This document shows, one piece after another, positions 1,401-64,000 of a stretch of DNA of 64,000 nucleotides. The stretch lies in the sequence record OM728297.1; one strand, 5' to 3'. The notes under the pieces are model-generated. The model did no database searches. It was not told the DNA's origin and worked only from the letters and a program-made list of their open reading frames with translations. The stretch's first letter is position 1, and every line of letters begins with the position of its first letter. The position numbers and the translations under genes are program-made.

Positions 1401-3651
1401 AATAATGTACTTTAACCATATCATTTTTAATGATTAATGTTAAGTTATCTTTAGTAAAAGTGTAATTATTTTTCTTATCCAATTCTAACTTTTCCCACCA
1501 ACTACCAGTAAGAACTTTAGAGATCTTTTGTGTATTTAAGTCAATTGTTTGAGAAATAATAGATCTCTTAGTAACATCAAGAACATTATTTAGAGATTCT
1601 AATCTATCTTTATCAGTAATACTATCATTGTTCACAATTGCTTCACAGAATCTAATTGTATTTTTCATTGCTTCAGCAGGAGCATTTTTCTTTTTATCAT
1701 TTAAAACATCTTCAACTTTTGGAAGAGAAGACCATCCCTTTAAAGTAAATTCTAGTAAACGACTCATATAGAAATCATCAGGGTGAGATTCAGCAACTTC
1801 TCGTCCAATACCTTGATATTCTAGTCTAGAATTTAGACCATGTGCTTCTAATACTCGAATTTGATCAGCATTAAATTGTGCAAAATGTTCTGTCTTTTTC
1901 ATGTTATATGATTTATTTTTCAATTCATTGATATAATATTTAACCACTTTTTGTTTTGCTTTAAGAACATTAATGTCATGAACAATATTTAAAATATTCT
2001 CTGGATCATTATTTTTAGCATATAATCTATTAATAATTGGAAGAGATTCTAAATTAAAGGTAACGTCAATACTATTTACAGTTTTTTGTCCTTCTTCTTC
2101 ATTCCAATTAGCATCTAGATGCATGAATAATTTATCAAAATCAATAACTCCTTCTTGATGTAATGCCAATAACTTATCATATGTGTCTTTATCAATACGT
2201 ACAGTAATTTTATTTACATTGAGATTTCCATCTTTAATGATAGTTTGGGTGCGGTAAATACATGAGTCAACTTCTTTAGGAAGATCCACACGTTTAGCTT
2301 CTATTGGGTTAATAGAAACCTTACCATTAATCTTATAACGAATACTAATATTTAGGTGTTTAGCATTAAAAATTAGTTCATTCATAGGAGCTAATGGCTT
2401 TTCATCACTTTTCCTGAATACATTAAAAGTATCAGTTACCTTCTTACCAATACGATTATATTCACTACTATCTAAAGGAATATAATAGTTATTTCCAGTT
2501 GTTAAAACTTTAAGCAGATCCATAACACAGAAAGCATCTTCTTTAGGAAGATATTCCTCTTCAGCTCTTCCATCTTTAAAACGTGTTTTATTAACAAAAA
2601 TAGCTTTATTAAGCTCTTTCATATATTCTTGTCTTGCATCAGCAGTAAATGATTCCATATGTTTGTCAATGAAATACTTGTCACCAATACTCATATGCAT
2701 AATATCAAGCGATTCATCTGCTTTTCCAGCATAATATAACTCATAAGCTAATGCATATTTAAAGTTAGTCTCAGTAGTAACTGGGATTTTAGAATTAATT
2801 GAATCAACATCAATAATTTCATCATTTACTTTAATTTCTTTTGCATCAGTAATAATAAAGAATTGATTTTTAATTTTATTGAGGAAATCTAGATGCATAC
2901 TTCCTTCAGAATACTTAGTGTTTTTATTACTTAGATACAAAATTCTTGAATTTTCATCAGCATCAATAGTAACCTTCTCAGATACCATATCGCTTAAAAT
3001 TTGATAGTTATGACTAAAAATATCATCATAATCATTAATCTTACTAGAGTGAATTAATCGTCCAAACATAGTCTGAGCTGACATTTCTTCTAATAAAGCT
3101 CTATTATAATAATTGCCATAACCAATTGTATTTAAAGCCATAATATCATCTTTAATGGAATCAATTCTTTCCCAAATTAACTCATATTCTTTTTTCTCAT
3201 TGCTTACTACAGGAACACCGTCAGTAAAGAAAGTCACATTAAAATTAGGACAGAGGGCTTTTAAGTCATCAATAATTTCTTTAACATGCAATAGTGATTC
3301 AGAAAAACAAGTAGCACCAACAGGTGATTTAAGAGTATCGAGTAAAATATTAATATCTTCAGAATCACGTTTTGATTTACCTTTGAATACTGTTTTACAT
3401 TGACCTTCACTAGAGAACCAGATAACTGAAATTAGATCATTATCACTCATTAATCGTAATGTACCTTTAACATTTTCAATTAATTGTGGTAAATCAGTAT
3501 TCATTGACCAAGATCGATCCAATACATGAATATGATGTAATCTGTCAACCTCAATACTATTCTCTTTCACTTCTTCTTTAGAATAATTGATAGCAATGAC
3601 GGTTTTTTCAGTATTTCCCAATTTAATTTGACTTTTATATGTTTTCATCAT
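1399..3651 (-). CDS. von Willebrand factor A (vWA) domain protein
   Basis: MIDAS DRSWS...T...TDG in N-terminal ~200 aa; SD GGAGG; start 3651 or 3648. Confidence 0.8.
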   Translation of the reverse strand: MMKTYKSQIKLGNTEKTVIAINYSKEEVKENSIEVDRLHHIHVLDRSWSMNTDLPQLIENVKGTLRLMSDNDLISVIWFSSEGQCKTVFKGKSKRDSEDINILLDTLKSPVGATCFSESLLHVKEIIDDLKALCPNFNVTFFTDGVPVVSNEKKEYELIWERIDSIKDDIMALNTIGYGNYYNRALLEEMSAQTMFGRLIHSSKINDYDDIFSHNYQILSDMVSEKVTIDADENSRILYLSNKNTKYSEGSMHLDFLNKIKNQFFIITDAKEIKVNDEIIDVDSINSKIPVTTETNFKYALAYELYYAGKADESLDIMHMSIGDKYFIDKHMESFTADARQEYMKELNKAIFVNKTRFKDGRAEEEYLPKEDAFCVMDLLKVLTTGNNYYIPLDSSEYNRIGKKVTDTFNVFRKSDEKPLAPMNELIFNAKHLNISIRYKINGKVSINPIEAKRVDLPKEVDSCIYRTQTIIKDGNLNVNKITVRIDKDTYDKLLALHQEGVIDFDKLFMHLDANWNEEEGQKTVNSIDVTFNLESLPIINRLYAKNNDPENILNIVHDINVLKAKQKVVKYYINELKNKSYNMKKTEHFAQFNADQIRVLEAHGLNSRLEYQGIGREVAESHPDDFYMSRLLEFTLKGWSSLPKVEDVLNDKKKNAPAEAMKNTIRFCEAIVNNDSITDKDRLESLNNVLDVTKRSIISQTIDLNTQKISKVLTGSWWEKLELDKKNNYTFTKDNLTLIIKNDMVKVHY

Positions 3652-61273: not shown

Positions 61274-61371
61274 TCTTTAATCTTTTTTTATTTTTAGAGA
61301 ATTAATTATAATAAAACAAAATTATAATAAAATAAACCCCTCAATAAAAGCAGAACAATATTGTTTAATTA

Positions 61372-61404
61372 AACCAAGGATATCAAATAATGATATCCTT
61401 GGTT
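61372..61404 (-). terminator. Hairpin terminator
   Basis: 14-bp perfect IR downstream of 61408..62094. Confidence 0.7.
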
Positions 61405-61407
61405 ATT

Positions 61408-62094
61408 TTATTCTTCATCTTCAGTAAATTCTACTACATCATAAATTTTTCCATTTTCATCTCTTGCAATGTATTCCCCATTTTCTTCAATAATTTCTAT
61501 TTGTAGATCCGGTATTTCAGCATCTTCTATAATATTGTAACTACTGTCTAAACAATAGATATTCTTGTCAATATCTACTACATACTGATGCTCATTTACT
61601 TCCTCTATTTGTGTATCTTCTTTTTCAGAATTATTCTCATTTTGTTCTTCTTTTAATCTTGCTTCTAACAATGCATCTATATCTTCTTCATCATTTTTCT
61701 GTGAACCACCAGAAATTTCAGACTCTTTTTTATTTATAATTTCACTAAATTTTTTATCTTTTTTATTATTAAGAATATAATCATGAACACCAGCAACAAT
61801 TTCTCTAATATCAGAGTTATCGCCACCCTCTTGATTTCTTTGATTTTTAAGTGCAATATCAGCTTCAGTTTTCTTAGCATTTACGATTTGCTGAATAATA
61901 GATATCTTACCAGTTTTAAGTGAAATTAAATTAGAGGTTTGTTTTTCTATAAATGTAAGAGTTCCATTACTGCCACTATTTTTAACTTTATCATAATGCT
62001 CTTTTGTTTCATCATATAATTCATCGATTTTTTCTAATTCATTCTGAAGAATACTTAATTCTTTAGAAATATCGATATTAATATTATCAGCCAT
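61408..62094 (-). CDS. Acidic coiled-coil hypothetical protein
   Basis: SD GGAG; late promoter. Confidence 0.7.
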   Translation of the reverse strand: MADNINIDISKELSILQNELEKIDELYDETKEHYDKVKNSGSNGTLTFIEKQTSNLISLKTGKISIIQQIVNAKKTEADIALKNQRNQEGGDNSDIREIVAGVHDYILNNKKDKKFSEIINKKESEISGGSQKNDEEDIDALLEARLKEEQNENNSEKEDTQIEEVNEHQYVVDIDKNIYCLDSSYNIIEDAEIPDLQIEIIEENGEYIARDENGKIYDVVEFTEDEE

Positions 62095-62122
62095 TTTCTA
62101 TCACTCCTATAATATTTAATAC

Positions 62123-62134
62123 TAATATAATGTT
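62123..62134 (-). promoter_or_regulatory. Late-type promoter AACA-N6-TA
   Basis: AACAttatatTA. Confidence 0.65.
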
Positions 62135-62157
62135 CCGTATCAAAAAGATTTTCAAGT

Positions 62158-62166
62158 ATATATTAT
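62158..62166 (+). promoter_or_regulatory. Early-type promoter motif ATATATTAT
   Basis: Directly precedes structured non-coding region. Confidence 0.65.
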
Positions 62167-62487
62167 TACTGTGACGATATCGAAGTAATAGAATTTCGTC
62201 ATAATTCCTACGGTATCATTGTAGGGTAATTTTCTTAGATATTGTTCATTTACACGGACTCAAACATGTGCCCGTAGCTGTAACAATAAGAAACACAAAA
62301 ACTAGTAATAAATAAGGTAATAAAAGAATGGTTGGAAAGACAAAAATATTCATCAGGCTACATACCACGAAAAGTGTATTGAACGAATGACAATACCCAC
62401 CTAGTGATTATAGCAAGATCTTTCACCATTCTCCGTATCCTTATAAAGAGAAAAAGGATTTTTTTAAAATGGAGAGGAGAATACGCT

Positions 62488-62568
62488 ATGACAAACACAG
62501 TTGAGAAAAATGATTGTCTGGGAAAATTCCCTATTGATGCAGTAAGAATTAGAAGTTCTATTATTTAA
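62488..62568 (+). CDS. 26-aa small ORF MTNTVEKNDCLGKFPIDAVRIRSSII
   Basis: SD GAGGAG ~8 nt upstream; lies inside the structured transcript. Confidence 0.4.
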   Translation: MTNTVEKNDCLGKFPIDAVRIRSSII

Positions 62569-62590
62569 ACATATACGACGACTACTTTTA

Positions 62591-62628
62591 CTATGGGTGG
62601 GGGCAACCCCACCCATAGGGCTTTTTTT
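62591..62628 (+). terminator. Strong intrinsic terminator
   Basis: ctatgggtgggg-GCAA-ccccacccatag then ggc and T7. Confidence 0.85.
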
Positions 62629-62677
62629 GGTCAATGTATAACGATTTCGTCAAAATACTTAATGGGGAGGTTTTTGA

Positions 62678-63451
62678 TTGAATTGGTTTAAAAGAATGTT
62701 TATGGCAAAGGAGAAGGATAAGGAAATTGATTCACTAAGAAGGATGGTTGAACAGAGTAATGAAACTATTAAACTCATGGATGGTGTCATAAAAAGATTA
62801 GAGGATAATATGACTAAATCCAGACAAGAATCAGCAGCAACTCTTCAGGAAGAAAAAGAATATCAAGATCAAATGAAATTGGAATCAGAAAGGATGCGGG
62901 AATATGAATATATTCAAAATGCTCAAAAAGTTGTTTCTACTTATTTAACTAAATATCTAGATCGTTTTAATCTAATTGAAAATCGTTTTTCACTTGCTCA
63001 TAATATAGATCTTCTTTCTAATTCTGATGACTTAATGTTTAAAATTGTACAAATGATTAAATTGTCTAAGACCAGTGTTGAATTTGCTACTGTTTGGAAC
63101 AATCATGTTATAAGAATTAGTATTGATAATGATGAAGATGATGTATATTATAGTATTAATGGTGGAAAAAATCTAAGTTCCGACATTGTAGGAACCAAAT
63201 TTCTTACTAAATTTAAGAAGGACATCCAATTAGATATATTAAATTTTCCATGTGTTCAGACAAATAAGATTTACGAAGTAACTGGTAAGAAGTACAAGTA
63301 TGTCTTAGCTAACTCAAGAAGAGAATGTTATTATATACTTAAAGATAAAGAGATGAAAACAAAAATAAAAGAAGTTAGTTTTGTTGAACCAAGTGCATAT
63401 ACACGTTCTATTAGATCTAGATTAGTATATGTAGTGCCTCATCAAACTTAA
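62678..63451 (+). CDS. Hypothetical protein with N-terminal coiled coil
   Basis: TTG start, SD GGGAGG. Confidence 0.75.
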   Translation: MNWFKRMFMAKEKDKEIDSLRRMVEQSNETIKLMDGVIKRLEDNMTKSRQESAATLQEEKEYQDQMKLESERMREYEYIQNAQKVVSTYLTKYLDRFNLIENRFSLAHNIDLLSNSDDLMFKIVQMIKLSKTSVEFATVWNNHVIRISIDNDEDDVYYSINGGKNLSSDIVGTKFLTKFKKDIQLDILNFPCVQTNKIYEVTGKKYKYVLANSRRECYYILKDKEMKTKIKEVSFVEPSAYTRSIRSRLVYVVPHQT

Positions 63452-63690: not shown

Positions 63691-64000
63691 TTATTCTCTA
63701 GTTAGAGAATAAATTGCTTGTATTGCTTCATTCCCAATTTGACGAGAGTTTCGTCCCATTTGGTCTAACATATTCTTCTTTTCCCATATTAGTCGTTCTG
63801 CTTCTTCATTAGCTTCTTTACTAAATACTCCACGTAGAGATACTGTATCACCATCATAATCTCCTCCTAATGCTTTTAAATAACCATTATAAGGAATTAC
63901 TGTGTCTACAAACAATTCATCTTCAGCAGGATAGTCAGGATAAACTACAGGATAATCAGGGAGATAACGATCTTCTAATTTTTGTGGCTTAGTTTCTTTT
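63691..64000 (-). CDS. rpoC: RNA polymerase beta' fragment with catalytic motif (probably virion RNAP), 5'-truncated by window edge
   Basis: LGGDYDGD (NADFDGD equivalent); frame is open to base 64000. Confidence 0.88.
   Translation of the reverse strand, partial: KETKPQKLEDRYLPDYPVVYPDYPAEDELFVDTVIPYNGYLKALGGDYDGDTVSLRGVFSKEANEEAERLIWEKKNMLDQMGRNSRQIGNEAIQAIYSLTRE

Follow-up and report, generated by a model that had tools for sequence, protein, structure and literature searches.

The window analyzed here, a 64,000-nt stretch of sequence record OM728297.1, derives from a jumbo Bacillus phage of the PBS1/AR9 type (genus Takahashivirus). Within it, positions 62100-62680 are shared with vB_BsuM-Goe21 (100% identity), AR9 (99.5%) and Internexus (99.1%), match PBS1 with a gap and align to the B. 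pumilus phage BpSp at ~70% identity with partial coverage. A 583-nt spacer separates a minus-strand homolog of g142 (61408-62094) from a plus-strand homolog of g144 (62678-63451), and a small unit built around a micro-ORF lies inside this spacer. The spacer is annotated with a 50-aa minus-strand gene, g143, in AR9, with a 30-aa plus-strand ORF in BpSp and with nothing in PBS1 and Internexus. As a gene, minus-strand g143 was rejected: it crosses a terminator hairpin, lies on the strand opposite to the RNA and has no Shine–Dalgarno (SD) sequence by eye. AR9_g143 and the matching 56-aa minus-strand ORF of the window (62464-62634) are probably mis-annotations of the plus-strand unit. The AR9 genome contains no paralogs of the unit, no tRNA was detected and the study of CBASS in Goe21 (PMC11153139) reports nothing on the micro-ORF locus.

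The g144 homolog, including its own SD, extends over 62664-63451 of the plus strand (CDS 62678-63451) and encodes a 257-aa protein of no recognizable family. Pfam and PADLOC returned no significant match and no defense or toxin family, and a single-sequence AlphaFold model of the protein was poor (pLDDT 50). In the Listeria phage LPJP1 (L015, 1420-3759), the g142 homolog directly follows the RNAP beta' gene on the same strand, and the cassette of RNA and g144, present on the plus strand in the Bacillus phages, is absent; the cassette, thus, looks like an inserted module. In the window, positions 63691-64000 (minus strand) are the start of the virion RNAP beta' gene, which in AR9 consists of three joined pieces interrupted by a homing-endonuclease gene (AR9_g145, g146). 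Late-promoter motifs (AACA-N6-TA) occur at 61315-61326 on the plus strand and at 62123-62134 on the minus strand, and both match published AR9 starts, at 115851 (plus strand, antisense to g142) and 116648 (minus strand, the g142 start). The plus-strand late transcript crosses the micro-ORF unit and may supply late g144 RNA. The segment 61201-61618 has the second most negative folding z score of the window (−5.1); it contains a hairpin between g141 and g142, aaccaaggatatc...gatatccttggtt (about 61374-61405), which is probably a terminator.

The unit is a stand-alone early transcript of ~455 nt (62173-62628) that runs from a promoter to a strong intrinsic terminator, and RNA data support these boundaries. 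An early promoter of the type used by the virion RNAP occupies 62154-62173 on the plus strand (AAGTATATATTAT-TACTGT-G), with a predicted start at G62173. Its core is an exact match to the AR9 early-promoter consensus, AAATATATATTAT-(6N)-G(+1) (Lavysh et al. 2017, PMC5312081), one of 11 such matches in the 64-kb window, and the motif is kept in all eight lineages compared below; AR9 itself carries an A>G change at 62160, inside the motif. Relative to the AR9 early units described in the same paper (PMC5312081), the unit has the same promoter consensus and comes from the same phage group but is missing from the start-site tables, which hold no early start at this position, and AR9 annotates the opposite strand (g143). 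At the other boundary, the terminator (62591-62628, plus strand) combines a GC-rich 12-bp stem containing eight G-C pairs with a 4-nt loop and a U7 tract. It was found in all eight lineages, among which its stem covaries. An octamer palindrome, CGATATCG, occupies 62175-62182, equivalent to transcript positions +3 to +10; it is exact in BpSp and partly retained in other lineages (GATGATATTG, GAAGATATTG), and it could be an operator or an RNA dimerization site.

Published AR9 expression values (Table S4) for the g143 stretch are 39, 531 and 1799 FPKM at 5, 20 and 40 min, whereas g142 and g144 reach 0.76 and 0.43 FPKM at 5 min, indicating that early transcription is confined to the unit. Contigs from two food-fermentation metatranscriptomes cover 62191-62888 (depth 146) and 62224-62581 (depth 430); in the same datasets, the g144 body has a depth of 4-5 and g142 a depth of 0. 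The RNA strand is the plus strand, as the A-tails added in poly(A)-tailed AR9 libraries follow plus-strand 3' ends. By AR9 FPKM and contig depths, g144 RNA is 10-90 times scarcer than the short RNA, and the g144/g143 RNA ratio in AR9 rises from 1% (5 min) through 8% (20 min) to 14% (40 min). A scan of the eight lineages revealed no conserved promoter motif, late-type motifs included, between the terminator and g144, and the gap between the two is, by eye, only ~20 nt in several lineages; together, these features suggest that g144 is reached by terminator read-through. Two candidate links to the terminator were rejected. A putative antiterminator, ACCCACCUAG, pairs with the terminator 5' strand (−16.7 kcal/mol) but is kept in L017 and L096 despite their differing stems and, judged by eye, fails to covary with the terminator. 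Coupling of ribosomes to the terminator was discarded as well, with the distance from stop codon to terminator stem varying from 4 to 22 nt (by eye).

For comparative analysis, g144 protein searches added six diverged loci from metagenome assemblies (L016, L017, L094, L095, L096 and L097) to the window group and BpSp, giving eight lineages. All six metagenome loci share the layout of a g142-like gene on the minus strand, a ~600-nt spacer and a g144-like gene on the plus strand, and flanking protein identity is 37-45% where measured (BpSp, L016 and L017). The eight lineages are alike in having the early-promoter motif, an SD with an ATG downstream, a frame that stays open for 26-38 codons, the terminator and a long fold-back stem. 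A seventh metagenome locus on a short contig, L098, lacks the unit, and a degenerate g144 peptide scan of viral and metagenome contigs yielded no relatives.

The 26-codon ORF itself, MTNTVEKNDCLGKFPIDAVRIRSSII (62488-62568, plus strand), had been proposed from the window alone; with its SD and ATG it is borne out by an open frame of corresponding position in all eight lineages. The chance of such an open frame is 0.04-0.11 per lineage, which gives a product of 1.4e-9 for lineages that are related. In three of the four lineages examined, the other two frames contain 2-6 stops each; L017 has 4 and 0. In seven of eight lineages, insertions and deletions in the first part of the ORF have lengths divisible by 3, and in the same proportion of lineages the ATG lies 30, 33 or 36 nt from a weak peptide motif, L-[GE]-K-[LF]-x-[IVM]-[ED], whose leucines are encoded by CTG, TTG and TTA. 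In BpSp (L003), the motif (..FPKLSMER..) is read in the frame 3322-3405, whose start codon, GTG or TTG, falls within the SD, and not in the ATG frame 3338-3430 (annotated as gp210); the frame may truly have changed, or the sequence may be in error by one nucleotide.

Conservation of the peptide is a different matter. Peptide similarity is weak (z −1 to 2.9), and diversity at codon positions 1, 2 and 3 is 0.51, 0.52 and 0.57, without third-position excess, indicating that the peptide sequence is under little constraint. The frame is conserved; the codon positions carry no signal of purifying selection on the amino-acid sequence. The eight peptides are hydrophilic (GRAVY −1.16 to 0.17), with no membrane helix and a maximum 15-residue hydropathy of at most 1.37 (below 0.7 in seven of eight). 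Since the peptide is barely conserved and not hydrophobic, it is not a type I membrane toxin, and the comparison drawn in the original prediction to type I toxin mRNA leaders fails on this point. Our reading of the sequences is that the frame is probably translated and that selection acts mainly on its being translated and on a short motif rather than on a folded protein.

The original prediction centered on positions 62425-62434 (ACCATTCTCC), thought to pair either upstream with GAATGGT (62326-62332) or downstream with GGAGAAT (62476-62482), the SD of the ATG at 62488; all of these positions are exact. The upstream option, helix U, joins a 5' strand at 62326-62340 (GAAUGGU..GAAAGA) to a 3' strand at 62419-62431. 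The downstream option, helix D, pairs the anti-SD CAUUCUCC (62427-62434) with the SD region GGAGAGGAGAAU (62471-62482). Helix U 3' strand and anti-SD together span 62419-62434 and share the nucleotides AUUC (62428-62431). In the window sequence alone, this pattern does not exceed chance: the region 62325-62568 has three perfect 7-mer complementary pairs versus 2.9 in shuffled sequences, and the three-partner arrangement arises in ~10% of shuffles. An exact anti-SD 7-mer no more than 100 nt upstream is rarer than the three-partner layout, at 1.2% of shuffles. Significance comes instead from comparison, as the order GAAUG(G/A), CAUUC(U/C)(C/U)C and GGAG-type SD is the same in all eight diverged lineages.

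This conservation, with compensatory changes in each helix, identifies both proposed pairings as real. In the eight-lineage consensus, 94.6% of the cells of helix D (AUUCUCC:GGAGAAU) are paired versus 48-73% when the partners are slid; in L095 a C-G pair replaces U-A, and L096 contains a wobble. In the fold of the window, the GGAG cores have a probability of 0.04-0.3 of being unpaired. In helix U, seven lineages have GAAUGG:CCAUUC without variation and BpSp has GAAUGA:UCAUUC (G-C to A-U); the extension of this helix covaries (GAAAG:CUUUC versus GAAAA:UUUUC). Both GAAU partners of AUUC are retained in seven of eight lineages. A further register suggested earlier, cgtat/atacg, has a pairing probability of ~0 and by eye is not conserved.

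How far the two helices act as a mutually exclusive switch was assessed with thermodynamic models, which ignore pseudoknots and bound factors. Suboptimal folds with full helix U (−123.0 kcal/mol) and full helix D (−122.3 kcal/mol) lie within 1.1 kcal/mol of the MFE fold (−123.4 kcal/mol) and of each other, and their ensemble shares are 0.26 and 0.12. The helices overlap by only 4 nt (AUUC), or 2 nt in L016, and are present side by side, with a junction that slides between them. When helix U is imposed, the cost of opening the SD falls from 2.3 to 1.6 kcal/mol and that of the whole ribosome-binding site (RBS) from 6.35 to 5.65 kcal/mol. Across the eight lineages, opening the RBS costs 4.5-10 kcal/mol, mostly because of the local anti-SD. 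The proposed switch, therefore, stands in part: the SD is sequestered by a conserved anti-SD, but with a 4-nt overlap and a gain of 0.7 kcal/mol, clean on/off control by helix U is a possibility that such models do not demonstrate. Of the controlling factors that had been envisaged, a ligand found no backing in Rfam, where no ligand-binding or other family matched the unit of the window or BpSp at E values up to 10. Antisense control fared no better in a scan for phage promoters: no early- or late-type motif is conserved on the minus strand of the eight lineages.

Between the promoter-proximal region and the SD, several sequence blocks are conserved. B1 (TTGTTCATTTACACGG, from 62242; TTGTTCA..ACACG) and B2 (GCCCGTAGCTG, 62270-62280; core GCCCGTAGCT) together span 62242-62280 and are exact in five lineages (window group, BpSp, L016, L017 and L094). 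An A-rich linker (62283-62325, plus strand) follows, which is unpaired in the MFE fold, predicted to be single-stranded and A/C-rich in the aligned lineages. Further blocks lie in 62357-62400: B4 (GCTACATA, 62357-62364), B5 (AGTGTATTGAAC, 62373-62384; core GTGTATTGAAC) and ATACCCAC (62393-62400), the last conserved in about five lineages. At 62396-62405, ACCCACCTAG is a near copy of the terminator 3' strand and can pair with the 5' strand (−16.7 kcal/mol); ATACCCAC, however, shows no covariation with the terminators of the lineages. RNAalifold places B2 and B4 in a helix that is 100% paired in all eight lineages versus 15-54% when slid; in L097, matching insertions on the two strands add an A-U pair and so preserve it. 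A candidate B1:B5 helix is invariant in six lineages and, by eye, disrupted in part in L095 and L097. The 5' strand of helix U lies within the B2:B4 loop and its 3' strand outside, so that the topology is pseudoknot-like or the two helices alternate. As DNA patterns, B1..B2 recovered only AR9 itself, and two B2..B4 searches gave 19 and 58 matches that, beyond the AR9 locus, were chance hits or tRNA genes without the other blocks.

The dominant feature of the locus, overlooked in the original prediction, is a fold-back stem, P1, formed between the 5' end of the RNA and the coding region. Its 5' arm (62175-62282) pairs in the MFE fold with a 3' arm at 62482-62577, a pairing also recovered by covariation. 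In the window, P1 is a 79-bp interrupted stem in which 67 of the 81 nt of the ORF pair with the 5' arm. RNA 62173-62630 folds at −123.4 kcal/mol compared with −87.9 kcal/mol in shuffles (z −6.2). Without the terminator, z is −7.3, the most extreme value among 107 window segments with a mean of −0.96 and an s.d. of 1.45; taken together, the z values for the window range from −6.2 to −7.4. BpSp has the same fold architecture (z −7.6), and P1 is predicted in all eight lineages with 51-79 bp and z −5.1 to −8.8, beginning at transcript nucleotides +1 to +3 in seven of them. Its best-aligned helix has 88.5% paired cells, 30 additional pair types and a score of 0.51 for covariation, while controls with slid partners reach 32-53% paired cells and a score of at most 0.18. 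Between the window and BpSp, compensatory changes persist at six pairs even when the arms are aligned by sequence alone.

Fold energies of the two strands are nearly equal (−97.5 versus −94.0 kcal/mol in the window, −96.3 versus −91.9 kcal/mol in BpSp). On the plus strand, P1 contains 18 G-U pairs versus four A-C mismatches, which favors selection on plus-strand RNA. Deleting the first 110 nt shifts the RBS opening cost by only ~1 kcal/mol, in either direction; in these models, P1, thus, does not mask initiation. It is the anti-SD that throttles initiation in them, and P1 covers the body of the ORF. With respect to the original prediction as a whole, the layout was right, but the transcript boundaries, P1, the core blocks and the terminator that parts the ORF from g144 had been missed.

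The unit is damaged in two laboratory phages. In PBS1 records, a 109-nt deletion between two CTGT repeats (62169/62173 to 62277/62281) has taken out the start site together with the 5' arm, B1 and B2, and PBS1 is viable. AR9 has the A>G change in its promoter motif and, in RNA-seq contigs, a junction of 62130 with 62243 between TGTTC repeats; the 112 nt thus skipped (62131-62242) comprise the promoter and the greater part of the 5' arm. The skipped part is spanned by no contig, although contigs cannot show that this sequence is absent; the skip could reflect a deletion in the genome of the stock or have arisen in the RNA or during reverse transcription. In Goe21, Internexus, BpSp, the metagenome lineages and the metatranscriptomes, the unit is intact. 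The lesions in the old laboratory phages PBS1 and AR9, a small sample, suggest that the unit is dispensable or costly in domesticated hosts.

Taken together, the data identify a real, unannotated, cis-repressed fold-back micro-ORF RNA of jumbo phages. The explanation we favor, and regard on sequence and comparative grounds as probable, is a stand-alone early RNA that acts as a structured micro-ORF messenger repressed in cis by two layers. A virion-RNAP promoter would drive a ~455-nt RNA that ends at the strong intrinsic terminator, which keeps the g144 message far scarcer than the short RNA. In the first layer, shown by comparison of the lineages, the anti-SD CAUUCUCC pairs with the SD and imposes a cost of about 4.5-10 kcal/mol on ribosome loading. 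In the second, likewise shown by comparison, the first ~100 nt, from nucleotides +1 to +3, zip onto nearly the whole coding region as a 51-79-bp stem. With its 5' end zipped onto the ORF, the untranslated RNA would be a closed rod with both ends buried; such a rod might be shielded from 5' and 3' exonucleases, and a translating ribosome would have to unzip the stem. The core between the arms (B1, B2:B4, B5 and helix U abutting the anti-SD) might receive a signal that shifts the balance. A more elaborate possibility, which we consider improbable, is a phage riboregulator of a new kind: an early RNA that closes on itself and has a conserved, pseudoknot-like core able to sense a signal from host or phage and release the micro-ORF, whereupon the ribosome unzips the rod. 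Unzipping would alter the fate of the RNA and perhaps also read-through into g144. If so, the module would be conditionally useful, for example against host defense, or costly in domesticated hosts, which would explain why PBS1 and AR9 carry lesions and recent isolates and natural populations are intact.

Three other explanations deserve weighing against the repressed-messenger model. The micro-ORF unit could be a switch in the sense of the original prediction, in which a ligand, protein or RNA that stabilizes the core pulls AUUC out of helix D and turns on translation of the micropeptide. In seven of eight lineages, AUUC retains both of its partners, including the GAAU that follows the SD and is dispensable for SD function and coding; the full-U and full-D folds are nearly isoenergetic (−123.0 and −122.3 kcal/mol), and the surrounding core consists of invariant 8-17-nt blocks in a pseudoknot-like topology, with B3:B6 crossing B2:B4. 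We nevertheless judge such a switch unlikely, as the helices share just 4 nt (2 nt in L016), all modeled states have a paired GGAG core and forcing helix U relieves just 0.7 kcal/mol of the SD opening cost. A riboswitch match in Rfam is also missing, and the product would be an unconserved peptide rather than a metabolic gene.

Somewhat better placed, if still on the unlikely side, is a non-coding structured RNA (a decoy, sponge or trans-regulator) or an attenuated g144 leader, in which the ORF is untranslated or serves to remodel the fold. RNA-level conservation exceeds that of the peptide, with invariant blocks, covarying helices and codon positions that vary equally, and BpSp reads the homologous nucleotides in another frame. 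The 10-90-fold excess of the short RNA over g144 RNA, the lack of a g144 promoter in every lineage and the absence of the cassette from LPJP1 fit as well. Against this, an SD, an ATG and an open frame occur in all eight lineages (1.4e-9), with in-frame indels in seven, and no conserved antiterminator was found; the strongest candidate, ACCCACCUAG, by eye does not covary. That the arms form a DNA-level inverted repeat, such as a cruciform, recombination site or replication element, instead of an RNA structure is very improbable. Similar fold energies of the two strands and the recurrence of deletions between short direct repeats would agree with this idea, but the arms lie exactly between promoter and terminator in an abundantly transcribed stretch, the stem starts at the first transcript nucleotides in seven of eight lineages and G-U pairs outnumber A-C mismatches by 18 to 4.

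PBS1 and AR9 are model jumbo phages with uracil-containing DNA and two phage RNA polymerases. The unit is missing from their gene lists, with AR9 annotating the opposite strand and PBS1, like Internexus, nothing. Few other non-protein features at the locus are as strongly structured or as well conserved, and the unit is abundant in natural infections. It may time or sense early phage gene expression and, if the laboratory-strain lesions reflect selection, points to a host-dependent accessory function. It is also an accessible example of a 5' UTR paired with an entire coding region, in a genus, Bacillus, whose transcription and translation are uncoupled.

Several known RNA systems share individual features with the unit. 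Like type III toxin–antitoxin loci (toxIN), it has the order promoter, abundant short RNA, terminator and read-through protein gene; unlike in toxIN, no tandem repeats were found in the unit RNA, and g144 matches no toxin family. Riboswitches that sequester the SD and RNA thermometers resemble it in their structured leader, an anti-SD:SD helix and a neighboring helix that shares anti-SD nucleotides. The unit differs from them in having no Rfam match, an overlap of 4 nt, a small energetic effect and a leader that pairs with its own coding region. Closer parallels come from hok of plasmid R1 and aapA1 of Helicobacter pylori, type I toxin mRNAs locked by long-distance pairing between their 5' and 3' parts. 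As in these, an ORF of ~30 codons has its SD sequestered by an upstream anti-SD, is equipped with its own promoter and terminator and belongs to an RNA closed by a long-range interaction of the 5' end with the 3' part, here 51-79 bp in all eight lineages. In contrast to hok and aapA1, the unit encodes hydrophilic peptides, has no conserved antisense promoter and folds back onto the ORF body and not the SD; it also resides in a virulent jumbo phage under an early phage promoter, and PBS1 lives without the lock. By analogy, the unit would work most like the fold-back-locked type I toxin mRNAs, minus the hydrophobic toxin and the antisense partner.
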